64,000 nucleotides of DNA, from NCBI RefSeq assembly GCF_006345805.1, contig NC_043002.1, positions 3,410,001 to 3,474,000 of the forward strand. The letters run 5' to 3'. How positions within the stretch are numbered: position 1 is the first letter of the stretch; each line of letters opens with the position of its first letter. Source of the DNA: Octopus sinensis (Eukaryota). Of the stretch, positions 1,857 to 40,400 are shown one piece after another. The translations under genes were made by a program, and so were the position numbers. A model generated the notes under the pieces. It saw only the letters and a program-made list of their open reading frames with translations. It did no database searches and was not told the DNA's origin.

Positions 1857-1889
1857 AAGAGAAAATTGAAGCAGTTCAAATCACTTCTG
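1857..1889 (+). CDS. Micro-exon 1 (33 nt, phase 1-1): EEKIEAVQITS
   Basis: Pyrimidine tract ttttacctctctcggtAG acceptor and G|GTATGT donor; stop-free; acidic start like the other array exons. Confidence 0.7.
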
Positions 1890-2030
1890 GTATGTACCTC
1901 TAATTCGTTAAACTAGTTTTTTTATTTGCTTTTTCAAAGTTTTTCTCTTTTATAAAATTAGAAATGTAAAAATCCTAAAACTAGACAAGAAATTATCAGT
2001 TGACAACACAGTTGTGCACTACAAAATCTC

Positions 2031-2062
<32 letters not shown>

Positions 2063-4057: not shown

Positions 4058-4093
<36 letters not shown>

Positions 4094-6483
4094 AGTTTTT
4101 AAAAAAAAATCTAAATTTTTTTATAACCTTTTTTTTTGTTTTCCCTTTGTATAGCAGAGGAGTGCCCTCTCCCTGATATTATTGGTATGTATTTTAAGAC
4201 TCCGGACTTTTTCTAATTTCAGTGATAAATTTTTTCCAAATTAGATTTTTTTTCTCAGAGTTAGACACATTTCATTCAATGATCATTTATTATAATTTAA
4301 CACTTCGATAATATTTAATTGGTTTAAAAAAATAATTATTTAAAATAATAATTAAATTGAATACTGAAAATTTTTTAGCTAAATAAACATCTTTGAACTT
4401 TTTATTAACAAAAGGAAATATGCCAAAAACTATCTCTGGATTTTTTTTACTTTCCTTTTCCTTAACGAAAATAAGAAGATGAACGTCCACTCCCTGATGT
4501 CATTGGTGCGTACTTTCACTCTCAGAAACTGCTTATTGCATGCAGCGTATTCTCACACTTATGTTTTCTCTGTTTATCTCACTGTCTCAAATTGGAAGAT
4601 GTGATTCTGTCTAGAGCTTTCTTTGATTTTAGTCACTGAAAGACATATCCTTTTCTACATAGGATGCCCAGTCTATCAAAAGCTTTATCCACAAAAAACT
4701 ATGGACTAATGAAATGGTGGGAAATCATAAAAAATCTTCTGGCAAATATTATGAATTGTGTCTCTTAATTGATGCCCCTGTGTAAACCTGAGCAGTAGTA
4801 TAAAAAATAGCTTTCCCAAGAATATAATGATGGAATCCACATTAAGAACTCAGCTGAACTGCAATTGCTATCAATATTAAAAGTTAACCTTTTTAATACC
4901 AATCCACCTGAGATCACCCTTGGTTCTATAACAGATTCCTGTTTTAAAATGATTAAAGTTAAAACTTCCCATAGAATTTTCATGTTATGTTCTAAGCACC
5001 AACTCCATACTGACAAAGTTATTTTAGGGGTAAAGGTTGTTTGCCAACATAACATGGCAGTCCTGGTTTAGGACGAATGTTGCTGTAATTTAGCCCCAGG
5101 AGACATCGTCTCCAGCTGGCTATACGACACAATCTGTCTCCTTATATTTTCGAACAAGGGAATTTAGCAAAATATAAGGACACATATTGTGTCGTATAGC
5201 CAACTGGAGACGATGTCTCCAGGGACTAAATTACAGCAACATTCATCCTAAACCAGGACTGCCACGTTTTGTTGGCAAACAATCTTTACTCCAAAGTACT
5301 GTTGCTGAATATCTTTTGTTGTGAGATTTAAAAATAGTAATTTTCCAAAGTTATTTTAGTAAATCCTTCATTATTTTCATAATTTATTGGAATTAGGTGC
5401 AGGCATGGCTCTGTGGTAAGAAGCTTGCTTCCCACCCACATAGTTCTGGGTTCAGTTCCACTGTGTGGCACCTTGAGCAAGTATCTTCTACTATAGCTTT
5501 GGGCCAACTAAAGCCTTGTGAGTGGATTTGGTAAATGGAAACTGAAAGAAGCTTGTGTGTGTATATATGTATGTGTATGTCTTTATATCTGTTTGTTTCC
5601 TGTCACCACTTAACTGGTGTTGGTTTGTTTATGTCCCTGTAGCTTAGTGATTCTGCAAAAGTAACTGACAGAATAAATACCAGGCTTAAAAGAATATGTA
5701 CTGGGGTTGAGATTCTTAAAGGCTGTGCTCCAGCATGGCCACAGTCTAAAGTTAAAAATAAAATAGCAGTGTACTTCAGCAGAAATATTGTAATGAAATG
5801 GTTAAACTTTTCAAGACATAGCATTTCTTAGATTGCCATTCCAAATATGTCGGACACTGTTAAAGATATTGTTTTGTTTTACTAAATTTCTTTCCTGAAA
5901 TGGTTTCTCCCTTTCATTGTTTCTGCACTCAATTTGAATGAGTTTGATCTCCTTACTTAAACATTGCTTAACACTCCATAAACGTGGAGTGTTAAGTCAG
6001 AGTTTGTTCTTTCTAGACGGTCCGTTTGTTGGGAGTGAGACTAATCTGAGATATTCTGGAAACAATGACTAATTGTAATCGTATCAACGAAATACCTACA
6101 GATGTTTTATTTTTATTCACTGAATAATAAGACTGATATCGGATGATATATGAGGGTGGGCGTACACACACACATGTATGTATATATAATACCTATATCA
6201 GGTGATATAGGTGTGTGTGTGTTTGAAAAAATGGGTAGAGATGGCTTGGGGGGGGGGGGTAATTTTCATTTCAATAATAATGTTTACAGTGAGTTACTCT
6301 GATACGAGTTTCAAGCTTCAAGGAACCATTTCCAAACTGAGAAATGTGTGTTTTTACTGGTTGCTTAAATAGCAAAAAAGATTTTTCTTACAAGTATACA
6401 CACAAAAAAAATATATACACAAGAGGAAAAAATATATATACACAAGAAGAAAAAAAAATACACACACACACACACACAAGAAG

Positions 6484-6528
<45 letters not shown>

Positions 6529-9500
6529 AGAAGAAGAAAAAAAAATATATATATACACACACACACAAGAGAAATATATATATATACACAAGAGGAAATT
6601 ATATAAAAAAGACTACAAAAGCATGTGTGTTCTTCTTCTTATACACACATGCTTTTGTAGTCTTTTTACATAGTTTCCTCTTTTTTGTGTGTATACTTGT
6701 AAGAAAAATCTTTTTTGCTATTTAAGCAACCAGTAAAAACACACATTTCTCAGTTTGGAAATGGTTCCTTGAAGCTTGAAACTCGTATCAGAGTAACTCA
6801 CTGTAAACATTATTATTGAAATGAAAATTACCACCCCCGCCCAAAGCCATCTCTACCCATTTTTTCAAATATATAATACTGTACCAAGAACTTTCTTTTT
6901 ATTATTCTACTATGTATGTATGTATTACATCATTGTTTAACATCCATTTTCCTTGCTGGCATGGGTTGGACGGTTTGACTGCAGTCTGGGAAGCCAGGAG
7001 GCTGCACCAGTCCCCAATCTGATCTAGCAATGTTTCTACAGCTGGATGCCCTTCCTAACGCCAACCACTCCAAGAGTGTAGTGGGTGCTTTTTATGTGCC
7101 ACTGGCACAGAGGCCAGAGGAGCTGGCATCGAACATGATCGGATGGTGCTTTTTATGTGCCACCAGCATGGAATCCAGTCACAGTGGCACTGGCATCGGC
7201 CACATTCGGATGGTAACATATAAATATATACATATGCACACACATATATGTGTAATACCTATATCAGGCGATGTGGGTGAACTTGTATAAGATGATATGA
7301 GTGTGTGTATATATGAATGTACATGATTCTTATATCAGATGGTGTGGGTATACACATATGTACATATGTAGCTACAAATGTATGCCTGTAATACACATAT
7401 CATCAGAGGATATGTATGTATATTTGTGCTTAAGAATATATGTCCAGATGTATATGCCACGTATATTCTGGAATTTTGGAAGATTCTTTTTAAAGTGATA
7501 GTCTTTATAGTTTGATAGAATGTACAGAATTGGTTAAATATTCAAGAAATAAACAAAGAACATACAGTTCCAATATAAAACGTAGAATCTCTCCCATAAC
7601 GATATTTTCTTGTTGCAAAACTGTGTCTTTCAGTTGACTACAAAGGTTGAAGTTAGATAAAATATTCAAGTTTTTTCTTCTTGTTTTTAACACAAAATTT
7701 TCTCAATTTCTTAATTTAGTGGTTTTCTTTTTTGTTTTTGTTTTGTGTGTGTTGTCCAACTTTTACATTTAATAATCTCATTTTTCCAAGCTTTTACTCA
7801 CTTAGAAAATACATTGTGAAAGAAAAATGGTTGTTCTTCAATGCTTTTAAATGCCATAAATAGCAGTATTGTTTAATTCAGTTTTGTAGTTGAGATTCAT
7901 ATATAGTTGTGTTCCTATTAACCAAAGTGACCATGTTTGCAGTAACCTGTGTGTCTGTGGTAGAATGTGTAGAGCACCTTTGTGACATTTCATTACAACT
8001 GTTTCCATTCTGAGTTCAAATCCTGCCCTTGACAACTTTGTGTTTCATCCTCCTATGTTGACAAAATAAATACTGAGTCAATGTTAAACCCTGAAAGGTG
8101 AAGCCCCAGAATGGTCACAGTCCAATGACTGAAACCATTAAATGAATATATCAAAGTAGGGTTTATTATCATTATTGAGTGAGAGAGCAGTGCATGCCAT
8201 CAAAGTGACACTGGGGTACAAAGCCCAGTATACCCATCATGTCTACCCATCTGATAAGGGTATACTAGGCACATGCATCACAACCATATGTGCACGACAT
8301 GGTGATCTCATATCAAGATAAACAACACATGACCTTGCAGGTGGGGCCCAGTTAGAATTTTCTTCAGGTTGAGTAGCCCATCCCGCTCAAAATGTCCCTG
8401 AATAAAGATTGTTTAAGGATGTTGAACGAACCACCCATGTTTCCAGAGGTGAATTATCTAAACCCCAAAGAATTCTTCTCAACACATGGCTATGATACTC
8501 TCCCACTACTTCTGTTCATGATCAGAGATGCACATATCGTCAGCCACTAAGGGACAAGCTCAACTGGTTAAAGTCAAACAACTGACAATCAAATCCGTGG
8601 TATTGAGCAGAATATTTGCTGTAGCCCATCTTTTATACCAAGACAAAACAATGTACATGATAACACTTGCAATCAGTTAAGATCAGAAGCCATGAGAGCC
8701 ACTGCCTGGTACTGCAACTGAGCATTTATTGTTATTATTATTAAGGTGACAAACTGGCAGAACTGTTGGGCAAAATTGGACAAAATGCTTGGTGGAGTTT
8801 CTTCCAGCAGTACATTCTGTGTTCAAACGCCACTGAGGTTGACTTTGCTTTTCATCCCTTTAGGGGTCAATAAAATAAACAGCAGTCAAAGAATTGAACT
8901 TCTCCCTCAAAATTTCTGCTTTTGTTGAAAGAATTATTAAGTCCAAAGTTCAAATTTTTTGCTCTCATAGAATTAAACAGATTTGTAGTGACATAAGGAT
9001 TTATTAGAAACATATGAGTGATTTTGTGTGCCATTATATCAAATATAGTTATAGGGAATCCTGAATGAAGGAAATGGAAAATGACTTGGATAAAATTAAC
9101 AATGAATGTCAAACTTTGATGCCAAATTATAGCAGTCAAACTGAATTCCTGTAGAGATTATCAAGCATCAAAATTTGGCCAGCATTTCAAAAGTGTCCCA
9201 TGATGGTTATCAACATATTTCTCAGAAATTTCCTTACCTTCCTATTGTAGCCTTAAAACGATTACTGACCAGCTGAGAGTCGGACATTAAAACCTCTAAT
9301 CCTAATCAAACCCCATTGTCACAAGTGAAGTATGCCTATTGATTGTGCAACAGCATAATCCAGGCCAACTCCATCCCAATACAAAGACAGCGAGCTGGCA
9401 GAATCCTTGCCATGCCATACAAAATGCTGAGAAACATTCCGTCTGTCTTTATATTCTGAGCTCAAATTCCACCAGGTTTCACTTTACCTTTCAGGGTCAG

Positions 9501-12177
9501 TAAAAAGTATCCCATTTGATCTCTGGACTCAATGTAATCAACGTTCCTCCTCCCTTATGATTGCTGGTCTGCTACCAAAATTTGGAACCATTATTATTAT
9601 TATTATTATTATTATTACTACTACTACTACTACTATTGTTGTTGTTGTGACACTGTAAATAGAAATAATTTTGACTGACTTCCATTGTCAATATCTTCAG
9701 AGTAATAATAATGGTATGACTATTCCAGAATCGTGTGAATAATTCTTGGCTTTTGGTTCCGACTTTAATTAGCTAATATATTTTCATGACTTGTTTTAAT
9801 TCTCTGAAATTGCATCTTGAGATTTCTTTGACTAATTTCTTTCCAATAAGCTTTCCGCTTATTCTTTATGTGAAAGCTTAATCCACCAAATGCTGTTTGT
9901 TAATCTTTTAATCTGTTGGTTTCTTTAAAGTAACTCTGATGACAGAGTGATTATATTTATTCCAAGCTAGGGTCCCCCCTGATCCCTTTTACTCTGTTCA
10001 AATCCATAGTTTGCTGTGGTTCTTAATGATTATCACCAAAATAAACAAAAAATCAGGGCAGGGGGGGTGCGTTTGTGTTTCTCATTGCTAACAACAGATG
10101 TTGGTTTGTCTATGTCCCTGTAACTTAGCAGTTCAACAAAGAAACCAACAGAGCAAGTACCAGACTTACATAAGAAGCACTGGAAACAATCTGATGTAAA
10201 AATTATTGAAATTTCAAAAATTATTTTCAAGTTTCCATTTGTCTTTTGCATCAAAGTATATATTTTTAATTAAATTTGATTTAACTATTAATTGATGAAA
10301 GCCAAACAGAATTGTGCATTGTTTTTGGAACAAATTTGTTTGATTTTAGACCAGGAAAATCACTTCTATTTTGTGTGTGTGTGTGCGTGCGTGCATGCAT
10401 GCATGTGTGTGTGTGTACGTGCGTGCATGCATGTGTGTGTGTGTGTCTATATTTGTTTCTGAAACTTCAGTGACAGTCTATTGATATTGATTTTATCTTT
10501 CATTCAGAGGAAGAAATACAAACTACTTATCGTAAGGGTAGGTATCGTGCAATATTCTATTATTATTAGTATCATTATTATTATTATTATTATGAAGGTG
10601 GTGAGCTGGCAGAATTGATCGCACGCCGGGCGAAATGCTTAGTTGTATTTCGTCTGCCTTTACGTTCTGAGTTCAACTTCCGCCGGGGTTGACTTTGCCT
10701 TTCATCCTTTCGGGGTCGATAAATTAAGTACCAGTTGCATACTGGGGTTGATGTAATTGACTTAATTCCTTCCGCCCAAATTTCAGGCCTTCTCCTTCCA
10801 GTAGAAGCGATTGCTGTTGTTATTACTGTTGTCAGCATTGGGTTTGGCTCTTTTAAGTTCTGAGTTAAAATCCTACCCAGGCTAATTTTGCCCTCATCCT
10901 TTTGAGGGTTAATCAAATAAAGTACCAGTTATGTACTGGGGTCAGTATAATCAGTTAACCCCTTCCCCCTTTGTACCAAAGTTTGAAACATTTCTATCAT
11001 AATACTGATTAGATATCAATATGTGATATCACCTGGTATTCGTACAGTTCTTTTTCTCTTTTCTTCACGACTCAATGCTGAGTTGTGCAGAGACTCACTC
11101 CATCGTCAAATATCAACAACCTCTTTAGAATAGGTTTTAAATTCCTACAACTTGTTACATCTCTGTCTCCTCCCTCTTGCCCTCCCCCCCGTCTCATATG
11201 GCCAACCCTGAGGTTGATTGTGCCACAGAGATTAGCTTCCTTTTTACCATGGGCCAACTCTATCACAGTTTCATTTATAATCCTCACATGACGATGGATT
11301 AGTTCCAGTTAATTTGAATTGAATTTGTGGATTATTGCTAAATTACTGTTGAGCCATTGAGCTGAGAAATGTCTTTCTACCATTCAAATGGCATTATTTT
11401 GTAAAACCAGTCTTGAAAGTACCATGGCAAGTTTTTCAACATAACTTAATTATAATGAACCTATAAATTTTATTTTTAATTATAATTATTATTATTTTTT
11501 ACTAAGAGATACTTAAACTTTTACTTCTGATACCCTGATTTTTGTCCCAAACCTGTCAGTATTTATTTTGTTCTATCTTTTGTCTTATAAAGCTGAGAAT
11601 TTGCCGCCTCCTAGTTTTATGGGTAGGTATCAGTTGTCTGGTTTGCATGATGCTTCCTGGAGTTTTCCTGTAGTCATAGAATCCCACTTACTAAAACTTC
11701 TAAAGTCATAATTTTAGTTACCTTGATATCTAGCTGTTGTATTGGTTCAATTTAATTCATTTAATTACCTTCCTCATAAAGACATAATTAAATCTTGAAA
11801 TGTGTTGTTAAGATATACCAGAAGTATACTTTCGAAGAAAATTATGTATTGTTATATCAGCCATGCTCTAAATGAAAACCATTTTTTAGTTGGCGTCAAA
11901 GAGAGAAGAGTTTGCTGCAAATATTTAGGTCCAATAATATTTGTTCCACTCACCTTAATTTCACACCACATCAATGATGATGATGATGATTGTTACTACA
12001 ACTGAGGTGGAACAACGATTCCATTATTAGATGCAAACCTCATCAGTAAAAATAAAAAAACAAAGAAAAATCACAACAAAAATATATATTAAAGGATGAG
12101 GATTAATTCAGTCTTTTGGTCCTCTTGAATAAAATGGCTGTGATACTGAAATATTTCTTGAGCAACTGTTTGCCCCG

Positions 12178-12221
<44 letters not shown>

Positions 12222-15200
12222 TGGATGATGTTGCATTGTGATGGTTGCTTTTGCTTTCATTGCAAAGAAAAAGTATAACATTTTACATTAATTTGTATAT
12301 TTTAAAAGGTTTTTAAATGGCAATCTTATTTTAAGCCCTGTGTGTGCATAGAGGCACCAACAACTGAAAACAGTCTTTGTGTGTTGACTTAGAATCTGTT
12401 GCAACATTACGTCCTCCTCTTCTCTCTCAGTTCAAAGAAGTTGTTAATTTATTCTGATTGAATTATTTTGCTTACCTGTCAGGTGGCAAACATGCAGTTT
12501 TTTCATTATAATCTCCTTCAGTCAGTCATTAAAACAGGGCCTGTGAGTATTGAGGTTTGAGGTGGGGCCTGTGAGCATTGAGGTCTTCTTACACTGCTGC
12601 AACCCCAAAAGAGAGAAACATGATGAGGTGGATCTGATCAGCAAAACTCTCTACTTTAAAGCATTTCTTAAACTGCCTTGATGTCTTTTATGCTAAATAT
12701 GGTGGAAGTAGTAGTACGGGGGAAGGTGCTGTGACAATGCATCATTCCATCTACCATTTGTTAGTGATACCCTACACCTGGTGCATGACACCTTTGCACC
12801 ACTTGGGTGACAACCCTCCAATCTATGGGTCTGTTTTGGGGTAGCTATTGAGGGTTTTATGAGGTCAGAGTGCAAATCCTCCCTCAGCCTCTTTCAGTTG
12901 CCTTTTATGAGATGCAGAGGAGATGTTGGGTCTATTCTTTGGCAATGCTGGTTCCCACACAGCACAAGAATAATATCAAATGAAGTGTTTTGCTCAAGAG
13001 CATAACACACCGCCTGGTCTAGGAATTGAACCCATGATCTGGTGATTGTGAGTAGATCTTCACCACTAGGCCAGCCACCTTCACTAAGGCTTGTTGTTAG
13101 ATGGGAAAAGATTTATTGTGGTTTGCTGCTTATATATTAGTAAAAATAGGCGACAGAGAAAGATGTTGGATTGCAGGTAAGATGTCACTGTCTGTAGAGA
13201 TGACCAAAGAAACCCAGATAACTAACATCAAAAGGGATCTGCAGTTTCTCAGAATTGTGTTTGTGCAAAAGGGTGATGTCCAACCCTGGTACATGAGAAA
13301 TATGGAGAAAGTGAGAACTGTGTGTGTGTGTGTGGTTGCACTTGATGTTTTTCATGAACTTAGTCCAATAAGAAGAATAAAGAGGTTGTATACTGTCAAC
13401 TTAACGTGACAGTAGGGGATTACACCACTGCTGTTTAGCCCTAGGAAGCATCGACGCTTCCTGTCGGCTTCGACACATTTCCTGTGTCCTTATATATTTA
13501 CGAAGGAAGCATCGAATAAAGAACAATTAATAAAATGTTACATAGTTGTGTAGGGGGAAGAATTTCTTTTTTCGAGATAGTTACTGCAAGAAAGGTCCTT
13601 CCATATTTAAGTGGACCCAAACTTGTTCAGCTTTTCTTTTATGCTCTTAAATTAGTCTTCAGCAATTGACAACTAAACGCATTTGAGGTTCTGCAAAGTA
13701 AATCATTTTATAAAGAACAAGAATTTGTCTGTTCAATTAAATTCCATCTGTGTATTCCTCCTTCATTTAATTTAGTTTTAATTGATTTCCTAACTAACGT
13801 ATTAATTTATTTTCCTATGTTATTTTAATATGAATAAAGTTAAGTTTCATTGCTAACAATTTTACATTATCAACCTTGTCTCCAATGTTTATCTTTACAC
13901 AACTCTCTGTTCCCCGACTGCTGGACTTAGTGTCTTTCTCTCCCTCTAGCCTTACAATGGATTCTAACTGAAACCTTTTATTTGTAAACCAAAGATAATA
14001 CCATTCTCATCCAGCTGGCCATATGTAGTAGAAGTATGGCAGCAGTTTTAGCTTAGTCAACTGATATCATTACTGAGTTTTCTGATTGAATTGTGCTTCC
14101 ATTAATAATTCTCTATCAGTTCTGAAACTGTCAATACGTGGCTGTTCATGTTTTCTTCTTTCACACTTTATATTATAATGTTCAGCCATTGTTCACTCTG
14201 ACGTAACACTTCTCATTAAGCCCCCCCCCCCCCGTTTGTCTTTTACTCTCATCTTAAACACTAATTGGTTTATTGTTGAAAAGGCATTCTACAAATGGAT
14301 CAGATGTTGCAGACCTCTCTCCAATACTAAAAGGAATGGTTAGATTTGAAAACGTGTCAGATATTTAATCTCCTAAATTTATTCCCCCCCCCCCCAGATG
14401 ACCAGAATGCAATATCGTTAGATAACAACTAATAATCAATCAATTGTTGGGTTCCTGAGTGTTGTTTTTAATCTCCAATATTAATCAATAACAACTGCAG
14501 TGGTTTATGATTAAACCCGTTAAGTCTTTCAATGGCTTTACACCTTTGTTCTTTGATATTTTTGTTGAAATTCTATCCTATTTCTGTTCCAGTTGAAGAA
14601 GTGGTCAATGATGCTGACATTGAGGGTAGGTAAACCAGATGATGCTGCTATGTATTAGTTCTGGTCAGACCCAGTCTTTTACCATTTTATTCATTGTTAG
14701 CAGGTGGGGTGGGGTGGGGGTACTACAGGCTCTTGTGAAGTCAAAACAATTCTTTCTCTTTGTATAATTCTGTGAATGTGTATATAATTACATTCACACA
14801 CAAACTGACAAAGTAATATAAAATTCCACCGACATTGAATTTAATTCAGCAGATCATATGTTGTTGGACAATGCTACTTCATTGTGAATATTATTAGAGA
14901 GAATTAATTATATTGGGTCATCCCATAAATAATACAGTTTTTTTCAATTGCATGAACTAAAAGTTGGAGGGGACGGGTTAAACTACCTGAATCAGCTTGC
15001 TATAAAAGCAGATAGTAATTTTACCTTGCCCTTGGTTTTAGTGCAAGTTTTGAAGAGTGCAGATCAATTTTAACAGTTATTTTTTTTCAAAGCTATAATG
15101 GAAGTGACAAAGGAACATATTCGACATATTTTGTTTTATGATTTCAATAAAGGCAACAATGCAACAAAAGCTGTGAGGAATATTAATGCAGTATAATGGA

Positions 15201-17426
15201 GATGGAACAATAAGCATAAGCCAGTGTCAATGGTGGTTCTAGAAATTCTGAACTAGAAACTACAGCCTAGAAGACGATCTTCATTCTGGAAGATCTGTAA
15301 AGTTTGATGAGGACGCCCTGCAAACCCTGGTGGAACAAGATCCCATTGTAACTGTAGAGAAGCTAGTAGAGAAGCTTGGATTTGATCATTCAAACTATTC
15401 AGCAACACCTGCGTGCCATCAGAAAAAATCAGCAAATTGGGTCAATGAGTTCCTCACAAACTTTCCCAGTCTAATCGCATGCAGAGAGTGAATGTGTGCT
15501 CTTCTTTGCTGTCACGTCTCACGAACGAACCTCTTGTGGACCGATTAGTGACTGGTGACAAGAAATGGTTTCTCTATAAAAATGTCAAGTGCCAAAGACA
15601 GTGGGTAGGGAAAAGAAAAACACTGGCACCCCAGGCTAAAGAAAGTTTTCACCCACGTAAGGTGTTGTTATCTGTTTGGAGGAATATGAAAGGTTTAGTG
15701 CACTTTGAACTTTTAAACCCAAACCAAATGATAACTAAGATCTACTTTGAGCAGTTTAAGTCAGCACTGGAAGAAAAACGACCATCTTTGGTTTCAAGAT
15801 GAAAGGTGTTCTATCAGGATAATGCTTGGCCACATACAATGAGGATGACATTCCAAAGGCTGGAGCAGTTTGAATGGGAAAAGGTGCTCCACCCACCATA
15901 TTCACTGGACATTGCCCCATCTGACTATCATTTATTTGACAGTCATCAAAATCATTTGGATGGAAAAAATATGAATTCTGTAGACAAGGTCAGAATAGTA
16001 CTGGAGGAGTATTTTTTGTCATGGACAAATGAATTTTTGAAAAGGAGCCTTGCAAGTCTACCAGATACATGGAAGAGCAATGTAGAAAATGAAGGAGAGT
16101 ATATTTTAGATTTTTAAAAATTTATCTTTATTTTGAAAAATAAAAGTACAAAAAACCCACATTATTTATGGTATGACCCAATACTGTTAGAGAGGACTAC
16201 TGTTTGTTGCTAATTTTTGTGTACAAGTTTTCTTTTAGTAGATCTTGGTGGATTAGGGATTAGTTTATCCCTGACAGTGTTCTTCAATGAATGTTGTTCA
16301 GTTTAGACAAAAGAATTCATTGGATTCTTGTCTGAAAGCTTGAGGTCACTTAGACATTCCTCACTTCAATAGATGACAAATTATAAACCTGGTTTTCTTG
16401 TTAATCTGAAATCTCTTTAAAACTCAAGTGCAGAATAGACATTATTGTGAATATCTTTCTGCTTAAAAAAAAAAAAATATTCAAAGGATTTTCTGTGCCC
16501 ATGGGTTTTTTTTTCCACCATGAGGGAAGTTCAACTTGGACTTTTAGAGAGAAGACCTGGCTGGGAGGGATGTATCCATTCGTGTGAGTGGGTGTTGAAG
16601 GTCTCCAACACAACCATCATTTGTTACCACATGTTGTGGTCTCAGCACTCTGCCAGGCTTCATTTCCCTATTTAGTTCTTGATAGCATCACTCCAGTTTT
16701 ATCTTTGTTGCCCATGAAGCTGTTTTCTGTCCCTCTGGTCACTGAGGATGTGGACACACAACTTCTGGGTCCTGATAATATGACTAAAAAATTACAATTA
16801 TTGCCATTTGAATGTTGTTACCAAACTTTGATCTGCTCCAATCTTTAAGACTGAATTCCCTGATCTACAGGCCAACCAACTGATCCACAGTGCTCCCCCT
16901 GTAGCTTGTCATCTTAAATGCCATCAGTGGTCTGGTGTCAGCCACCTTTAGTCTGTCCTTCTTATCTTTAGGGTTCATACTTAAAGAACACTAAAACTGC
17001 CAGAAGAAAGTGATGAAAGCTTTCGTTTGTTTAAATCTTTTAGTTTCTTTTATCAATAATTGTGCTTTTGAAATCATCTTTGTAATTAATTATATTCTAT
17101 ACTTTTTCACTATACCATTGTACTTTATTAATTGATATGCTGTTGATAAAATGTACTTTTATGCACTTCTAAAGTCTTGACTCTATTTCACTACTCAAAT
17201 GTTGACAATGTAATAATAATAATAATATCATATATATGACAATGTAATATATTACATATACGATGATAGTGTAATCACAATATATTATACATTCTTTAAT
17301 ATATTATTATTGATTTTTAATTTTTGTTTTACATTAATAGAAGATTTACCACCTCCAGTTGGAGTGGGTAGGTACCTGCCTTCTGGTTGATTTGCATGCT
17401 CTTTTCACTTTACTCTCTTTTCAAGA

Positions 17427-17469
<43 letters not shown>

Positions 17470-29400: not shown

Positions 29401-32400
29401 CTCACAACGCCCGGTCTGGGAATCGAAACCGCGATCCTATGACCGCGAGTCTGCTGCCCTAACCACTGGGTCATTGCGCCTCCAAGGGTGTGTATATATT
29501 ACATTTGGAAACAAAGTATAACAAGACTCTATCATTCTATCTCCAAGAACAATTATTAGGAAGAAAAATTTACCATTTTGGGTGGGTGAGCAGTGTTCAT
29601 TCGGTGGGCCCGGAATATACATTCCTGATAACCAGGTGACTGCCCTAATTAGTTGTACATGTTAGGTGGGAGTGAATTGTTTCTGTTGCAAAGATAGATC
29701 ACAAGAAAAGAAATCCGATATGGCAACTTTGGTGACCATCACAAGTGAGATGATAAAGGACGAAGAAGCATTGTAAGATGCAGTCTTGCTCTCCAATACA
29801 ACCCATATCAGAATGGTAAAACTTGCCATAGAAAGGGAATAATGTTAACATTACAATTAAATTTTAATTTTATAATAAATTTATAAATTTTAAGTTGTTT
29901 ATATATATATAATATGCTCACAATAATTTGTGGTGTGTATAAAATAGCTGACACTTTTTATACATATATATATAGATATCTTTTTTTTCTTATCAGAAGA
30001 CAAATTTTCGGCACCAATTATTGTTGGTAGGTATTGAGTTGAAGCTTCAAGCATGGTGTTCTCCTACTTAAAAAAAACCTATTTTGTGTAGTTTTTTTTT
30101 TTTTTGTAAACTGATTAATTTTGCAGCTGTTTCTTGTCAAAGATTTTGGGCTTATCTAGTAATCTTAGAAAACTTAAAATGGTTTTATCATAAGTTTAAT
30201 TATGCATGCAAATATTTTTAATCACTTAAAATCTTGATGACTTTAAAATTACATTTCATATTAATATTACAACAAAAAGCGAGTAGAACACACACACACT
30301 CACTCACTGCTTTTTAAAAAAAAAATGTAGTCAAGATTGTTCCACTAAGAATGTTTGTGAAGAATGTTTGTCTTATTCAACAGAATTGATGTTTCTGTGG
30401 GTTTGCAATAATACTTTTATTAATTATAGTAATGGTGTCATTATCGTTACTGTGCTGTCATATGTAATTTTCTTTATCAATTTCTGATGTTTCGTGTTAG
30501 TTAACAGTGATCCGTTTTATCAATGAAGTCTTTAATCATAAGTCTTTAATCAGCACCCATTTGTGACATTTGATTAACATCTCATTTTCCTTAATAACCT
30601 AGTCTTCAGTGAGCAACAGCTGCATATTTATTTAAGTAAAAGTGGGTCTAAGTTTCACAGCATTTATTTTATGTCTGTTTTTTCCATACTAGCACGGGTT
30701 AGATGAATATATTATTGAAGCGTTGTTTTATAGGCCAAAAGAACTGACAAAAGCAACACCCTTTCATAGCTCACAACTCAAAGAGCACAAATGTAAGCAC
30801 AAGCCTACACATATATGATGGGCTTCTTTCAGTTTCCTTCTATCAAATCCGCTCACAAGACTCATGCCCAAGGTGCCGCACAGTGGAAACGAACCCTTTG
30901 TTGTTTAACCTTTTGCATAGCATCTCTCTGTAGGTTTTCACTAATTTTTTGCTGTTGTTTTTTTTACACTTTCTTGTCAATAGTGTCAACATTCTGAGAC
31001 TAAACTTTGATCTGCTTTTTCTTTTGCTTTCATTGGACTGCATTCATGTGTGCAATGTAAAAGGTTTTACTCAAACATATCAATATCTGGTGCTTAATAG
31101 TCTCTGTTTGTTATACTGCTAAGTTACAGCACAAACAAAACCAGAACTCTTTTACAAAGCAATGTCAACATCAGATATATATTTCTTTATTGCCCACAGG
31201 TGGCTAAGCACAGAGGGGACAAACAAGGACAGACAAAGGGATTAAGTCGATTACATTGACTCAGAACGTAATGGCAGATGAAATGCCGCTAAGCATTTTG
31301 CCCGATGTGCTAACGATTCTGTCAGCTCACCGTCAACATGCAGATATAGAGACATACATACAAACACATATGCTCAAAAATACACATACACAAATATGCA
31401 CATACATGTACAAACACATGCACTCACGTGTGTGTGTGTGTATGCCTCTCTCCTCGCGACTGCTGCAGCCCAACACTGCTCTCTTAATTCTCTTTCTCTC
31501 TCTCCTGTCCTCCCTCTGCCGACTGTATCATTACTGTCACTTCTTTCCTATCTTTATATACCTGGTGCCAGTGACATGTAAAAAGTACCATCCAAAAGTG
31601 GCCGATGCCAGTGTCCCCTGACTAGCTCCAGTGCCGGTGGCACATAAAAAGCACTATCTGAATGCGGTCGAGGCCAGGGCTGCCTGACTGGCTCCTGTGC
31701 CAGTGGCACATAAAAAGCACTATCCAAACGTGATCGATGCCAGGCCTGCCTGACTGGCTCCTGTGCCGATGGCACATAAAAAGCACCCCCTACACTCTTG
31801 GAGTGGTTGGCATCCAGCTGTAAAAACATTGCCAGATCAGATTGGAGCCTGGTGCAGCCATCTGGTTCACCAGTCCTCAGTCAAACCGTCCAACCCATGC
31901 CATGATGGAAAACAAACGTTAAATGATGATTTCATCCCTCCCTGCATTCCTCACTCCCTTTTGTACCTCCATGAGCTCCTTACTCATACACCCTGAACAA
32001 TCCTCTTCCATTCCATTTATATTCGCATCCTTTTACCTCAAGAGCACATCCTGGCACATTGTCACCATTTCTTTCGCTGTCCCTTACTCTTCCTATCTCT
32101 CTCTCTCTCTCTCTCTCCAACTGGGGTAACCATGCATCTCCTCTAGAGCATGATACCTGTTTCTGTGCCCCTATCCTAGTTTAAGATCTCATCTCCTGGC
32201 ACAAAGCCACATTTCCTTCAATACCACTTACCATCTTAGCTGAGCGATCTTTGTCTTGCAGGTCTTGTGGTCACCAGTGCCAGTGCCAGGTGCCACTTCA
32301 CTCTGCACCCAACCACATATTTTACTTAATTTATTTCAATTTCCTTTGTAAATGGAAATGAATGTATGCTGTTTCTCTTCTGTAGACGTAGGAAGAACTC

Positions 32401-34373
32401 CCCTTCTGCTATGCCCAGGGGGTTTGGGGTTTGCTCTCATTTCCTGACCTCAATTTTGTGTTTTTTATTGCTTCTGTAGTAAAAAATGGATAAAGCAGCT
32501 GCTCCATGCAGTTTAAACAAAAAAATTATCTTTAAAGAGTTTGTTTTACCAAACTGGTTTCTGTAACTGATGCTGTGTCTATTTTGCATGATGATAATTA
32601 CAATTAATTAGTTGTTAACGACTGGTATTTTTGTTTAGTTTGGGTTTGTTTTTGATCAATTTATATTTTGGCATTTACTGCCATTGTTTTTCATCAGTTT
32701 TTCCTGCAAAAATGTCTCTTATGACTCTGTAAAATATTTCATTCGTGTTTGTCCATTTGTCAAGTGAAACCAAACTGTGGCATTTTTTCAAAGTCATTTT
32801 GGCGTCTAAATGGGTCTGATGATGATGATGATTATTTCTTTTTGGTGAAGCAGTTTGGAGAGAAGAGACACCGAGGCAGTCCTTCAGCTGTTTGCAATTA
32901 TAAGGGGATTAAGAATCCTTGCTCTAAGATATTTCCTTTTCTGATTTCAGATTTTCTTGTTCTTTTGTTACACCATCAAATTCCTCTTCATTTAGAAACT
33001 GGATTCTTGGTATTATAAACTCAAATTGCAGCTAAAATCAATTTACAAAAAGGAAAATTTAGAAATTATTTTCTGAAAGTAGAGATTTTTGTGAATATTT
33101 TCTCTCTAAAATTGCGTGGCAATTTTGATGGATAGAATTTCTTTAACAAAATTTTCATTAATACTTTTGTCACCATGTTTCTGTTCAAATGCACCGTATT
33201 TGTTTCAATTTTGAAAATAACGAAGAATTGAAATAACTTTACCATTTTTTTAGCTGCTGTTTGAAAAATGAATTAGCATGAAATTTCTGTAGATTTTAAT
33301 TTAGATCAAGTTTTGAACAGGAAGTTTTTATCATAAAAACCGGGGCAGCACCAGGCAGGTTGGTATCAAAAATTATCAAAACTGTTTCATTTCATTTCAT
33401 TTCATTTGGGTTTGAGTCCATGCTCAGGCCAAGTCGAAGACTCCAGACATGTGTAGGAGCGAGTTTGAGTCAGTTTGTGCTCGTTGTGTATATCCTGTTA
33501 ATTGGAATTCTAAATTAGTTTTCATAATTTAGTTTATCTTTTAAAATTCTTTTTGCTAGAATACCTTTTGGTACAAAATGTGACACAGTACATTCTTCTA
33601 TTTTACTCCAGTTTGACAACTTTGTGACCAATAGAACCAATTCTGTTTTGGTCTTGTCAGTTCTTATTTAGTTTCACTGAATATTGGAACCTAAAGCTTA
33701 AACTTCAATTTGTTTGCAAATCTGTATTTTTTTTTTTTTTCTTTTGAGGAGACCTTTTGAGTGAAGTACATCAACATCAAAATAAAATAAAATCACAATC
33801 AAATGGGAATTGTAGTTGTGGTTCCTGTGCCGGTGGCACGTAAGAAAGACACCATCTGATTGTGGTCGATGCCAGCCCCCTCGCCCTGACAGGCTTCTGT
33901 GCTGGTGGCATGTAAAAAGTACCATCTGAATGTGGCCGATGCCCGCACCACCTTGACTGGCTCCTGTGCCAGTGGTACATAAAAAGCATCATCCGATCGT
34001 GGTCGATGCCAGCCTCCTCTGGCCCCTGGGTCGGTGGCACATAAAAAGCACCCACTATACTAACGGAGTGGTTGGCATTAGGAAGGGCATCCAGTTGTAG
34101 AAACATTGCCAGATCAGACTGGTGCAGCCTCTTTGCTTTCCAGACCCCAGTCGAACCATCCAACCCACGCCAGCATGGAAAACGGATGCTAAATGATGAT
34201 GATGATGATATTATAGAACAATGTTGTCCTGGTAGTTAATATTTTTAATTAACCAAACCTGTAAATTAGGTTGTTGTGCTAACGAGAAGTTATCTTTGTT
34301 TTGTAATTCAAGAATATACAAACAGGACCTAAGAGTTAAGAACTTTTTTCTATCAGTAGTTGGCTTTGTGCTT

Positions 34374-34420
<47 letters not shown>

Positions 34421-37400
34421 AATTATTATTATTATTATTATTAAACTCTTCTCACTCTTCATGGCAGAAGTAGAGACAAGGAGAGAGTAAATATAAAACT
34501 CAATGATGGAATTCTTTCTTGATTTAGAAATTTGTTTAAATTTATGAAAGACAAACATTTCGTTAGACAAGGCACCAGTCTTTCCAGATTAACTTTACCA
34601 GAAAGTCTGTTATATATTGCCAACAAACTTTAATCAACTCAGTCATTTTGGATAGAAAATGTTTCATATCAATTTTATAAAGTTAATAACAATTTTCTGT
34701 TTTGGTGATTTTTTTAAAATCCAAAACTGGTATCTTCCATCAGCATAGCCATGGGAGTCTCAGAGACAGCAAGTATTTAGCTGTAGTGGATGGAGTGCCT
34801 GCCATGAACTAAGAAAACGTTGGGCTGGCACCATTAATTTAGTCACTTGGGTAAAAATGAATTCTATGGAAGATGTTTTCAAATGTTTTTGAATAAAGAT
34901 TTCTTATGCCTGCTACCTCCCTAACGTCTTGAAAAATGGCTGAGGAGGTACCAATTAGTATTCCATCAAGATTCATTTAAGAACCAAATTAATTTTTGGA
35001 TACTGACAGGAATCTTTAGTAGGTATTGAAGGAAATATTGTTAGGAAGGAAGACGTTCTCAAAGATTTTAAATTGGGGAAAAAGGACTTTGATATATTTC
35101 ATTCTTGAAAGAATTAAATATTTTTGTTTTAGAAGAGACTAGCTGCACTTGAGATGTTTCTGTTGGTAAAATGGAATAATTAAAAAAAAAAATAGCATTA
35201 GACTTGAAGTAAATTACTTTCTGACTTTAGTTTATTAAAGAGAAGAACAGGTTTGTTTCTTTACCCATAATTGCCCAATTCTAAAAGATAGCGGTTCTCA
35301 ACTGTGGCTCCCAGAGCCACATGCATTCTTCCAGCAGCCCTTGATGGTCTTCCATCTATAAATAGATTTTTCTTTAATTGACTTGTTTTATTTTTCTTTG
35401 GTGTACCCCCCAAAATAATCCAGGTTTTGGATCTAGCCCAGATATTAAAAAGGTTGAGAACCCTTACTCAAAGATGTATGGACCTTATAGGTATTTTTGT
35501 AAGGAAGAAATATTTGGAAACAGCAAAGGTTTTCATATGAATAGGAATGAAAAGAAAACTGCAAGGACCATACAGGTAAATATACCAGGTAATAATCTTG
35601 GTAAACATACCAGGAGCATCAGGTAAATATATCAAGTAGATACCTTCTCTCACAGAATCTATATAACATGTTTATTTTTTTTAATCGATTGCAATATCCT
35701 TTTGTCAACTGAAATATTTTTGTGAGCAACTTTCAATGTCTGTCACAGAGACTGGTTTTAATTACAAAGACAAAAACGTTAGTCATCCAAATGGTAAAAG
35801 ACTATCTGGACTTGTTTCATATCAATCTCATTAAAATATTTCAAATACTTAATTACAGACTAAATTATCTTGGATGTTGTTAAGTCTTTAATTATATTAA
35901 TTAATATTAGTCTGATAAAGAGATCTGTCTCTCTATTGATTTTAATTTCTTGTGACATAAACTATGTAAATTGTAACTCATTAGAATACATAATTATTGC
36001 CTCCTCCGTGTTAATAAAATTATTGTTATTAAAGTGGCGAGCTGGCAGAATAGTTAGCATATTGTACAAAATGTTTACAATCATTTTGTCCGTCTTTACA
36101 ATCTGAGTTCAAATTCTACCGAGATTGACTTTGCCTTTCAAGGTTGATGGGAGAAGTACCAATTGAGCCCTGGAATTGGTACTAAAATTTCTCCTAAAAT
36201 TTCAGGCCTTGTACTTAGGGTAGAAAAAATTATTGAGGTGAGCAGCATCTCAGAAAACCTAGTTAAATGTCTGGTTATTTCACAGACATTAAAGAAAACA
36301 CCATGAACATCACTCTACATTTCTCTTTGGTTAAAATTCTCAGACTTTTTTTTTTAGAAATACTAAACAATGGAGAGGGGGAAAATGGTAAAGCACTGGC
36401 CTAAATACCATGCAACATTGAGTTTTTGAATTTAAATCTTAAAGAGGGTAACTTTCTTTTATCCATTATGGTTTCATAAAGTAGCTGTTATTATTTTTAC
36501 CTTCACCTATGTAATATATATATCCTAACTTATTATAATTTAAAGTAAAATCATAAATTTTAATTGTAATCTTTGGTTGAACTTGTTTTCAATCTTGTCT
36601 TTCAGTCCTGGATTTGTGAGGTAAAAAGTTAAACAAAAAATTTAGTTTTCTAAGAAGTAAAATTCTAAAGTCAACATTATTTCAGATTTTATAATTTTGT
36701 GATAGGAATATTAAACAAACCAATTTCAGTTTTTAAAAAATTTACTGTTTACTTTTTAAATGCTAGAAATAAGTTAATTATCATTTCCTATTTTATGAAT
36801 TCATTTATTGAATATTTTAATTGAATTTGTTTTCACTTAAATTACAGATTCTTCTTATGGTACTCAAGAAGCCATATTTTATGAAATTTATTAAACTAAT
36901 TGCTTTCTTTCTTTTTTTTTATTATAATGATGCTTTTTGTTTTATAATTTATGTACAGTGCTTTGTTTTTTTGTTTGTGTCTTCCATCATTGAATTAATT
37001 AATAAACTATTGATTGGCTTTTATATTGAAAGAATAATAATTTCTAAAAGCAAGTCAGTGATATTAATGAAAACTAATCAGTGAAAATTCTTGTTTCCTT
37101 TCTTTAATTTATGTAAAAATCTTTGCAAGATGTATTTTTAATGGAAATATAAAATTCTTTTATGTTGTTTTTTTTATCATTGAACGATGCCATTGTTGTT
37201 GTTTGGCTTCAGGTTGTCCTAATCAAGTTGACAATCTAAGTCATCCTATCTTTTTCCCAGGTACACTGAATCCAGGAGACCACCTTATCCAACGTGGCCC
37301 CTTTTTTTTTTCCTTTCCTCTAAGATGTTAGGGCATGGTATTTAACAATTATTTCTAGCCACCTGAACTACCACAGAGAGGTTTCTTCATTGGGCTGGCG

Positions 37401-40400
37401 GCTATTGAAAAACATTTCCTTGTTGATGTTGTCTTTGACTATCTCTGATCAGTGTCAATTAAAAACTGTTAATTAATATTAGCAAAAACGATGATAGAAA
37501 AGATGAAGTGGTTGGTCAATAAGAGTTTATCTTTGAAACCTTAACCTTTTTCAATTGAAGTCTGTGTATGTTTGTATGTATGTATATATCTGTATATAAA
37601 TAAAATGTGAATACTTGTGGTGCGTCTGTTGAGCTAACATTCACACTCTTTATTCTCTAATTACCATGCAGGAATGACTGCAGACGGTGAGTAAATGACT
37701 CCTGCATGACACCTTTACCATTATTGCTTTTTTTACCATTTCTATTGCCCCTGATATTTTTATTCTTGCTACTTGTTGTTGTTGTGTGTTTTGTTTAACC
37801 CTGCTCCTGTCATCTGTTTCGATTCCATTGTTGCTTATTATTAAAAGTCATTGTTAACACAATGCTTAACCGTTTCGTTATGTATTAAAGCAATTAGCCA
37901 CAGGATCAGGGTTGACATATTAAGTCACTGTTCAAATCTGATATTGTAAAATATTTAAATATTTTATTGTTGCATGTTAATGTTGTCATTGTAATTCTGT
38001 TTTATTTATTCAATTTTATTTTATTTACCATTTTATTGCTTGTTTTATTTATATAGCCAGAATCACAAACATTGCTCTTCTTTTAACTTCTTTTTTTTTT
38101 TCAATATATTTTTTTTAACATTCAAAATAAGTCTTTAATATATTTTTTCATGACTTTCTCACAGTAGTTTTCCTGCTTTTTGTGAAGAAGCAGACCTGGT
38201 TCCATTTCCCACTATAGACTTTTTGGCAAATAGAACAATGCACTTGATACGTCACTATAAAATACATAAGGACTATGTGGCTCATTGCTTGGTTTGTTGG
38301 GTTTTTTGAAAATTAAAATAATCTTGGACAAATTTGTTTTTGAGATTTCCCATACTCCATCTTTTTGGAAGTTTTCCTGGTCTGTTATTTTACCCATTGG
38401 GGTGACAGCACTAAGCAGTGATGTGTTTAAATACAAACGATAGTAAATTATAATGGTGTACTTCAATTTGACCTGCTGTATACCTCAAGGGTGCCCACAG
38501 GAATTTCCAATGATATAATTCAGTTTCTTTAAATAAGAAAGGCTAAATAAATCCTGATTCTTTTATCAATCAGATTCCTATTTATGTCTTTTACTATTTA
38601 CAATTCTTCATAATTATGAACTCTTTGTTATATTTTCATTACACTAAAAATCATTGATAAAGTAATTTGATGCAAAATAATTATTGAGTGACTAATTAAC
38701 TTGTTAATCACTCTGCTAGTGTGATGCCTGTTATATGAATTAAGCATATTTGCCCTATTATGCTATGTAAGATGAAAACCATTCCATATTATTTGAGCAG
38801 TTCTATTCAGAATAACATTTAAAAGTCAACCATTGTTATGTGTACTTGGAAATACTTCCATTTTGGAGTACATTAAGTGTTCAGAATGGCTTATCAGTGA
38901 GTAGAATAACATTTTTTAAAAACTCCTCCAAACTAAACCTTACTTTCATAAGGTTTCACTTCATAATCTCCCTTCATTTTTATTAGGGATACCAAAGGAT
39001 TCTTATATTGACATCACTTGAGTTCAGGTCTTCATTGCTATCAAATATTGTTACTTTATTATTATTATTATATTATTATTATTATTGAATGATATCTTAA
39101 TAGTTTTTGTAAAATAGTGTTTAGTCTTTTGTTAATAATATCCATTTCAAAAATTGGATTACCAACATTGCACAATGGAATCATAGCTATTTACATTGTA
39201 TGCACACACACACACGTATATGGTAGTATAGTCGTTGATAGTAGTATATGCTATGTAGTAAACACTCTTCAACTGTATTCTGCTACCAGTCTTTGACATA
39301 AAATGTAATTCCTTGTCTGACCAAAGAAGAGATTCTTCCAACTCTACAAGAACCTAGCTTTCAGTTCTGTGCTATTTATTCAGTGTGTGTGTGTGTGTGT
39401 GTGTGTGGAGAAAGATGATTGATCGAGTCTTTGATGTGACTTAGACATATCGATTCCATAAACTACATATTGATGTCTCCTGATAACATTAAATGGATGA
39501 GAAGCAAATGTCAGTGGCCAGCTCGAAACAGTCTTATATTTCCAGCCAAGCTGAGTTCCGACCACAACACAACAAAGTTAAACAACAGAAACTTGCAATC
39601 AATTTGCCAAGCAATGCAGTAATTTAAGTGCCAGCATCTGATTCCTTCAGCAATTCACCTTTGTTACCAAGATGGCCATCACTTCTATCTGGGAAAGAAT
39701 TTTGCTGCTTTTGATGATGACTGTTCATTTGTGTCTTGATTGAATTTCTGTCTAATTGGCTATTTCAGACATGTGCACCTTGAATGTAATTCCGAGACAA
39801 AATCAGCATGACACAGTATGTTATCGGTCTCCCCTTTGAATTACATGTCTAATCCACCCAGCAGGCTTCAGTACACTTTCCCAAATTCATTCACAAGATT
39901 TGGGCTGAGCTGGGGCTCTAGAAAATGACATTTGACTAAGATGCCAAATACTGGGATTGAACTGCTGACTTTGTAGTTTGTAAGCCATGCTGCATCTACA
40001 CTTACTTACATACATGATAGGTAGCTGCATTCCTATCACACACACACACACGATAGGCAGGTGTAAAAGAAAGAGCATAAAACGGTTGATGTTTTGCCAG
40101 TCTCAGTGTTCGTTATGCATGAATGTTGTCGATGTTCGCACTTGGTGCCGTTTAATGACATTCTTGTGTTATTCTTCAGATATGTGTGTTTTGTTTTAAT
40201 TCTTTGTTTTTATTTTTGTCAATGATTCTCTTTGATGTCTTGGCATGAGTTAGCATTATTATTATTATTTTCAGTCTTGAAATTATCTGAGAAAAGGTGA
40301 TTCCCTAATTAATTGTATCCAAATTGGTTTTGGGAATAATGTCAAGTTGTCTTTATATCAGACACATTAAAAGTATTCCATTAAAAAGTTTCTGAAGATT

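Follow-up and report, generated by a model that had tools for sequence, protein, structure and literature searches.

The window analyzed here is a 64,000-nucleotide (nt) stretch of Octopus sinensis contig NC_043002.1 (positions 3,410,001 to 3,474,000, forward strand), and all octopus coordinates below refer to it. It comprises the 3′ two-thirds of LOC115212809, which an exhaustive search of representative proteins and exact sequence look-ups identified as the host gene of 15 micro-exons. The product of this gene is a conserved, uncharacterized three-part protein, with an N-terminal domain, an HTH_69 winged helix, and a domain resembling methylthioadenosine/S-adenosylhomocysteine (MTA/SAH) nucleosidases. 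The micro-exons form a cassette array that arose by tandem exon duplication, its members being symmetric, in-frame, and paralogous. We consider it very probable that the array is a lineage-specific feature of an ancestral phase-1 linker intron and that it lengthens the acidic linker encoded there. RefSeq already annotates the exons and predicts at least 48 protein isoforms from them. A literature search, limited to the searchable library, found no paper that mentions LOC115212809 or describes such a micro-exon array in this protein family.

The core of the gene comprises five exons between 43312 and 62465 (+ strand), located by tblastn with homologues, and all of its introns are in phase 1. 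The HTH_69 winged helix starts in the first of these exons (43312-43420, beginning GLPKIDNRPKDEILREK..), the phase-1 acceptor of which is conserved in the bivalve Mactra (contig L001) and in the European Nucleotide Archive (ENA) contig L003, and it is completed in the second (48053-48171). The nucleosidase-like domain begins in the third (50254-50397) and continues in the fourth (56369-56494), and the last coding exon (61724-62465; 247 amino acids [aa] plus the stop) encodes the bulk of the PNP_UDP_1/MTAN-like domain. HTH_69 (PF22979) matches residues 158 to 217 of the spliced window model with 36.3 bits (cut-off, 27) and the RefSeq protein XP_036359489.1 with 35.9 bits. PNP_UDP_1 (PF01048) scores 29.7 bits, above its cut-off, in P0017, a relative that shares 53% identity with the window core. 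The AlphaFold2 model of P0017 (predicted local distance difference test [pLDDT], 88) matches MTA/SAH nucleosidases, e.g., 3eei_A (E value, 8e-12; template-modeling [TM] score, 0.77), and each of its 50 best hits in the PDB is either an MTA/SAH nucleosidase, bacterial ones among them, or futalosine hydrolase. Judging by this model of a relative, an MTA/SAH-nucleosidase-like fold would be a fair description of the second domain of the core gene. Sequence search detected no relative of solved structure, and the ~150-aa N-terminal domain of the relatives matches no Pfam family. The N terminus of the LOC115212809 isoform (MADTQEGSNFDYIVMTPTKKGE..) is hydrophilic by eye.

Upstream of the core lie the 15 micro-exons, all on the + strand. 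They encode, in order, (E)EKIEAVQITS (1857-1889, 33 nt), AEECPLPDII (4155-4184, 30 nt), EDERPLPDVI (4476-4505, 30 nt), EEEIQTTYRK (10508-10537, 30 nt), AENLPPPSFM (11593-11622, 30 nt), VEEVVNDADIE (14593-14625, 33 nt), EDLPPPVGV (17341-17367, 27 nt), VEEVVSDVDVDVE (18655-18693, 39 nt), EDLPPPIDE (19485-19511, 27 nt), VEEVSDIDFD (22974-23003, 30 nt), EDLPPPVGV again (23460-23486, 27 nt), VEEVVSDIDPD (23991-24023, 33 nt), AEEVISDTEID (25791-25823, 33 nt), EDKFSAPIIV (29997-30026, 30 nt), and GMTAD (37672-37686, 15 nt). Every peptide was thus recovered at the position and in the frame given by the original prediction, including the two occurrences of EDLPPPVGV. All 15 exons, at 15 to 39 nt, have a length that is a multiple of 3, are in phase 1-1, end in G, and are preceded by AG and followed by GT, again as predicted. 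The accompanying statement that each also has a pyrimidine tract held less uniformly, the tract being weak near the AG at 4476, 17341, and 19485. The further proposition that any subset of the exons preserves the frame was borne out: the codon at each junction is always G+NN, and therefore no combination of exons can create a stop. That the exons are invisible is true of open reading frame (ORF) tracks, but RefSeq already annotates them. The original guess that the DNA came from a cephalopod was correct.

The splice signals of the micro-exons stand far above chance. Ten of the 15 have the donor G|GTAGGTA, and the + strand of the window contains 10 copies of the octamer GGTAGGTA, each of them at the 3′ end of a micro-exon, and the − strand contains none, compared to an expectation of ~0.7 per strand estimated from base composition. 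The core exons, with the donors GTGAGT, GTTACA, GTCTGT, and GTAAGG, depart further from the consensus than the micro-exons do. A strict scan, which required a pyrimidine tract, an AG, a phase-1 segment free of stops, and a G|GTRNGT donor, returned only these exons on the + strand and none on the − strand; when the scan was loosened, all 15 were recovered over a thin background that included a few weak extra candidates (e.g., 21054-21083), none of which is present in any of the 17 RefSeq isoform sequences that we parsed (see below). No match to Rfam was found anywhere in the window.

Evidence that the exons are spliced together, and into the core, comes from the RefSeq XP_ isoforms, which are Gnomon predictions with isoform numbers reaching at least X48. 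The 708-aa protein P0156 (XP_036359489.1, isoform X47 of LOC115212809) is identical to the window core and joins exons 1857, 4155, 4476, 10508, 11593, one EDLPPPVGV exon, 23991, 25791, 29997, and 37672 as predicted, without 14593, 18655, 19485, 22974, and the second EDLPPPVGV exon. Ten candidate isoforms were then constructed from the window exons and the X47 prefix and looked up by exact sequence, and four of them exist: full inclusion of the 15 exons is X8 (XP_029637387.1, 760 aa), full inclusion minus 19485 is X21 (751 aa), X47 plus 14593 is X45 (719 aa), and X47 minus 37672 is X48 (703 aa). The full-inclusion peptide followed by GLPKIDNRP is the same as XP_029637387.1 residue for residue, confirming that the micro-exons feed the winged-helix/nucleosidase-like gene. 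The 90% identity cluster to which these proteins belong has 48 members, and all 15 among the members listed are isoforms of LOC115212809. The idea that the array peptide is absent from databases, raised by word-indexed protein searches that gave no Octopus match and that also missed the cuttlefish transcript described below, was rejected once these isoforms had been found by exhaustive search of the representatives and by exact look-up; such word-indexed negatives should not be taken as absence.

The linkers of all 17 parsed isoforms, which span 703 to 766 aa, can be accounted for completely by the 15 modules and four alternative acceptors (4158, 4479, 19488, and 29976). Six exons (1857, 4476, 11593, 23991, 25791, and 29997) are constant in this sample. 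The following are skipped at least once: 4155 in X40, 10508 in X28 and X40, 14593 in 8 of the 17, one copy of the 17341/23460 pair in X23, X30, X45, X47, and X48, 18655 in X42, X45, X47, and X48, 19485 in X9, X21, X37, X42, X45, X47, and X48, 22974 in X37, X42, X45, X47, and X48, and 37672 in X7 and X48. Skipping occurs in blocks within 14593-23460 in X45, X47, and X48, with the loss of up to 52 residues (X47 and X48). Three of the alternative acceptors are of the NAGNAG type: 4158 is used in X18, 4479 in X4 and X30, and 19488 in X2 and X17. The fourth, 29976, lies 21 nt upstream of exon 29997 and gives a 51-nt form (29976-30026) in 11 of the 17 isoforms; these isoforms translate the exon's own pyrimidine tract, adding DIFFFLS, a hydrophobic insert in an acidic linker, and this form is either a real major form or an alignment artifact. 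Inclusion and skipping of exons are hence seen at the level of the RefSeq Gnomon isoforms X2 to X48. The figure of 2^15 combinations that had been put forward is nevertheless an overestimate, because only 8 or 9 of the 15 exons vary among the parsed isoforms and six are always present.

These isoforms also bear on whether the micro-exons might instead be part of a different gene, either upstream or nested. Two points favor this: the array contains no start codon, and annotated bivalve homologues begin at the winged-helix exon (P0014 and P0022). However, it is precisely at this junction that the N-terminal domain is joined to the winged helix in full-length relatives, the bivalve N termini are translated intron ends, and the RefSeq isoforms hold the N-terminal domain, the array, and the core in one protein, with constructed sequences that match exactly. 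The separate-gene explanation is thereby refuted, and we give it practically no credence. The array lies in the linker intron inherited by a single gene, since the junction between the N-terminal domain and the winged helix is kept in the relatives and no N-domain coding sequence was found within the 64-kb window. The array also extends 5′ of the window. In XP_036359489.1 the N-terminal domain ends ..QLDQSEAPLSPE and is followed by ~33 more linker residues before exon 1857; at least these ~33 residues (VKVETTVMRDHEIPQTIVYESKLPPPPPPVTE) are encoded upstream, and the same N-terminal part is present in all 17 parsed isoforms. The exons for the linker segments VKVETTVMRDH, EIPQTIVY, and ESKLPPPPPPVTE and for the N-terminal domain itself are located upstream of the window. 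Two other readings of the 5′ part of the array were discarded: that exon 1857 is the end of the conserved N-terminal domain, rejected because XP_036359489.1 places that end and the ~33 linker residues further upstream, and that the first part of the winged-helix exon gave rise to EDERPLPDVI-EEEIQTTYRK, dropped because its basis was a BLAST E value of 0.15.

Alignment at the DNA level, splice signals included, groups five of the micro-exons as B type (14593, 18655, 22974, 23991, and 25791; pattern V-E-E-V-V-S-D-x-D-x-D) and three as A type (17341, 19485, and 23460; pattern E-D-L-P-P-P-x-x-x). Four more (4155, 4476, 11593, and 29997) are A-like by peptide alone, and 1857, 10508, and 37672 have no paralogue within the window. 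Identity between paralogues is 73 to 88% in the exon, 74 to 79% in the 30 nt upstream, and 85 to 92% in the 12 nt downstream and is near the shuffled background beyond ~100 nt. Lengths among paralogues differ in multiples of 3, as originally noted (33/39/30/33/33 nt and 27/30 nt), and all exon indels are in-frame. Because identity is confined to the exon and its near flanks and the indels are in-frame, the pattern fits selection maintaining both the peptide and the splice signals rather than recent segmental copying, and the micro-exons would be old duplicates under constraint. The pair 17341/23460, with exons identical at 27 of 27 positions and flanks 81% identical over ~150 nt, look like recent or homogenized copies, unlike the rest. 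No extra or decayed A- or B-type copies were found in window positions 1 to 43311, and when metagenome contigs were scanned for exact B-type exon patterns, the one match was unrelated and due to chance.

Near-identity of exons raises the alternative that the isoform diversity is largely an annotation artifact, produced by ambiguous short-read mapping between near-identical exons and chained by Gnomon. The 17341/23460 pair, identical in the exon and so similar in the flanks, would lend itself to such confusion, and for each of X45, X47, and X48 two parses are possible that fit equally well. Confusion of paralogues does not, however, explain the skipping of the unique exons 4155, 10508, 14593, 19485, and 37672 or the four alternative acceptors, and the exons themselves are beyond doubt. 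We regard a predominantly artifactual origin of the diversity as improbable.

The window core is 63 to 65% identical to molluscan members of the family, which have the same domain order and the same position of the phase-1 linker intron. Full-length relatives from Nucella lapillus, Lingula, and transcriptome and metagenome collections consist of the ~150-aa N-terminal domain, a short linker (..LDEEEAPATPG|INKQDKR.., ..LEKDQAPKTPG|FKKEDTRP.., and ..EEAPMSPG|LQKVDKR..), and the winged helix. Short linkers are found in Nucella (P0149) and Lingula (P0157), in transcripts P0132 and P0147, and in the cuttlefish sequences P0155 and P0177; in gastropod, bivalve, and brachiopod relatives, family examples being N. 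lapillus KAL8603292.1 and Lingula XP_013380931.1, the linker is ~10 aa. The phase-1 winged-helix acceptor is shared by Mactra (..ttttccag|GTTTGGTT) and L003. In Mactra, where the intron is longer than 10 kb, the 10 kb of sequence preceding the winged-helix exon showed no acidic/proline micro-exon array or candidates, nor did the whole 4.8-kb linker intron of L003; the ancestral exon end in the latter (..EEADNPPPSPG) resembles octopus exon 11593. The annotated bivalve N termini (..YFPG|LVKEDTRP) are translated intron, and these gene models hence lack the upstream exons that encode the N-terminal domain. In Mactra antiquata L001 (10001-10060) and in P0022, the proteins begin with translated intron (..IYIVCYFPG and ..FCFHFQ) before the phase-1 acceptor.

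In the cuttlefish, the linker holds one 8-residue micro-exon, compared to the ~10-residue linkers above and to up to ~190 micro-exon-encoded residues at the same position in the octopus protein. The linker of transcript P0155 reads APLSPE-YIIEPTL-GLQKVDNRP, and its N terminus matches the Acanthosepion pharaonis model P0177. The A. pharaonis contig (L005, GCA_903632075.3) carries one 24-nt phase 1-1 micro-exon, (E)YIIEPTV, at 83561-83584, 8.3 kb after the N-domain exon; its donor, G|GTAGGTAT, is the same as in octopus, and the micro-exon is present in P0155. No other candidate of equal quality was found in the 22 kb examined. The first 160 codons of the cuttlefish gene are spread over 77 kb. 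Comparison of these sequences indicates that micro-exons in the linker predate the octopus-cuttlefish split and that their expansion into a large array took place on the branch leading to octopus.

Other insertions occur at the same place. P0154 has a 10-aa insert at the junction of the N-terminal domain and the winged helix, and P0168, P0170, P0174, and P0186 have a Methyltransf_FA domain (PF12248; E values, 1e-22 to 1e-25) there. As the octopus array, the P0154 insert, and Methyltransf_FA all sit at this junction, it is a recurrent insertion point.

The 148 linker residues encoded in the window include 50 D/E versus 5 K/R, with 12% Pro, 24% Val plus Ile, and a computed isoelectric point (pI) of 4.05. 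LPPP motifs recur among them, and four S-D-x-[DE] sites fit the consensus for CK2, S/T-x-x-D/E. The best-supported interpretation of such a sequence, together with its exon structure, is a modular, frame-neutral tether, the length, charge, and motif count of which would be set by exon choice. In the mechanism we propose, repeated tandem duplication of two kinds of exon of 27 to 39 nt filled the linker intron in the octopus lineage. Because every exon is in phase 1-1 and ends in G, any of them could be joined to any later one with the frame and the neighboring residues unchanged, and skipped products would not be expected to undergo nonsense-mediated decay. The strong splice signals (a pyrimidine tract plus CAG, G|GTAGGTA, and extended complementarity to U1) would allow recognition of such small exons between introns of 0.3 to 7.6 kb. 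Splicing would then keep a constant subset, include or skip the others, and shift four acceptors, yielding isoforms with linkers of different length and charge and with different numbers of PPP motifs and of S-D-x-D/E sites. The linker could act as an adjustable spacer, a multivalent docking region, or an acidic autoinhibitory tail for the winged-helix/nucleosidase module, its possible targets being proline-motif readers or basic surfaces, e.g., those of its own winged helix.

Several points weigh against this interpretation. The acidic linker is only presumed, from its composition, to be disordered. The spliced window product scores 23.4 bits for PNP_UDP_1, below the gathering cut-off of 25.1, and we know of no catalytic activity for the HTH_69/PNP_UDP_1-like family. 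The isoform chains are assembled from short-read junctions, and it may be that no single molecule has ever shown one of the combinations in full length. Finally, some of the block-skipping junctions within 14593-23991 could be read-mapping artifacts, because 17341 and 23460 are identical and the first ~20 nt are common to the B-type exons.

Whether the variation is put to use is a separate matter. Near-full inclusion, as in X8, could be the only functional product, with the other isoforms as splicing noise; frame-neutral exons escape nonsense-mediated decay, and so skipped isoforms could build up in small amounts and enter the annotation through its pipeline. The strong splice signals of all the micro-exons, stronger than those of the core exons, point in this direction, as do the six exons never skipped in the sample and the near-full length (735 to 766 aa) of most parsed isoforms. 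Signatures of regulated splicing were also sought in vain. UGC (TGC), which serves as an enhancer motif for neuronal micro-exons, lies within 30 nt upstream of the acceptor in 2 of the 15 micro-exons compared to 31% of random AG sites, and at −5 only in 37672. The complement of a conserved element upstream of the B-type exons has 12 matches compared to 11.6 expected, i.e., docking/selector complementarity is at chance level. The sequence ATAATCTTGGACAAA (38318-38332, + strand), ~630 nt past the last micro-exon, is complementary to TTTGTCCAAAATTAA but for two mismatches, TTTGTCCAAAATTAA being an element conserved ~100 nt upstream of the B-type exons 18655 and 22974; as matches overall are no more numerous than chance would give, we treat this complementarity as a coincidence. 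On the other side, the skipped exons are several and quite different, unique and duplicated alike, the block skips remove as many as 52 residues in X47 and X48, the alternative acceptors recur in many models, and frame-neutral acidic mini-exons are regulated in other genes, namely, troponin T and the schistosome micro-exon genes (MEGs) (PMC8559874, PMC10526429). Splicing noise around a near-full-length product is in our judgment a realistic explanation, if short of a probable one. Regulation of the isoform mix, for its part, is something we infer. The fuller proposal, a regulated, octopod-specific diversification device in which tissue- or state-specific exon choice would set the number of PPP docking motifs and phospho-acidic motifs in the tether and so tune the partner binding or autoinhibition of a nucleosidase that binds nucleic acid, is offered as a speculation that we think unlikely.

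The modular tether has partial counterparts among known systems. In the hypervariable N-terminal part of vertebrate troponin T (fast TnT exons 4 to 8 and the fetal exon), as in the octopus array, small frame-neutral acidic cassette exons vary the length and charge of an unstructured stretch, presumed to be so in octopus, beside a conserved core (PMC8559874). Troponin T is, however, a muscle filament protein with fewer such exons and with a variable region that is terminal, not interdomain, and both regulation and effect have been demonstrated for it, whereas the octopus array is known from sequence and predicted isoforms. Schistosome MEGs have 10 to 20 very short exons, mostly multiples of three, with long introns and splicing variation, and are hard for automatic annotation, all of which is likewise true of the octopus array, in its case with the variation seen in predicted isoforms (PMC10526429). 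MEG products, in contrast, are small and secreted, with a signal peptide, and are encoded almost entirely by micro-exons, while the octopus protein of 760 aa has a hydrophilic N terminus and globular domains, and its micro-exons account for about a quarter of it (148 residues from the window plus ~33 upstream). The array is not a MEG for this reason, and no sequence relationship between MEGs and the array was seen.

The PEVK region of titin is differentially spliced. It resembles the octopus array in its symmetric exons multiplied by tandem duplication and in its P/E/V-rich, presumably unstructured segment, and differs in that the octopus exons are three times smaller, are of two alternating types, and reside in an enzyme-like host instead of a structural spring. 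Like those of the neuronal SRRM4/eMIC program, the exons of the array are no longer than 51 nt and preserve the frame; the octopus exons differ in lacking UGC enrichment and in being lineage specific and duplicated, not deeply conserved single exons. Nor is the array a mutually exclusive cluster of the Dscam type: each parsed isoform contains two to five B-type and one to three close A-type exons together instead of exactly one exon, and docking/selector pairing was not found.

A transposase remnant and a repeat family were also observed in the window. The intron between exons 14593 and 17341 contains a degenerate mariner-type transposase (15252-16114, + strand), the reading frame of which is in at least three pieces and which Pfam Transposase_1 matches at 15449-15799 (E value, 2.8e-15). 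A dispersed repeat family is present in both orientations at 31617-31786, 33823-34019, and 52571-52690, with further copies near 6979-7287, 43950-44282, 51140-51562, and 54748-55089. It has internal tandem units of 63 to 67 nt, its translations share ..QSDLAMFLQLDALPNANHS.., and it has no Pfam or Rfam match; it is probably an octopus element resembling short interspersed nuclear elements (SINEs).

The practical importance of these findings is modest while the function of the protein and the regulation of its isoforms are not established. The locus is a useful annotation stress test, in that the whole array escapes models based on ORFs and many ab initio ones and bivalve models begin at the winged-helix exon. 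It also illustrates how a conserved, uncharacterized protostome family tolerates large insertions at one position, a micro-exon array in octopus and Methyltransf_FA elsewhere. Overall, LOC115212809 provides an example of one phase-1 interdomain-linker intron growing into a frame-neutral cassette array through duplication of exons of 27 to 39 nt, with outgroups on hand that have no micro-exons (gastropod and brachiopod transcripts) or one (cuttlefish). If the regulated device outlined above were true, the array would be a splicing-based counterpart to the diversity that cephalopods generate by RNA editing, a MEG-like architecture within a conserved intracellular enzyme.

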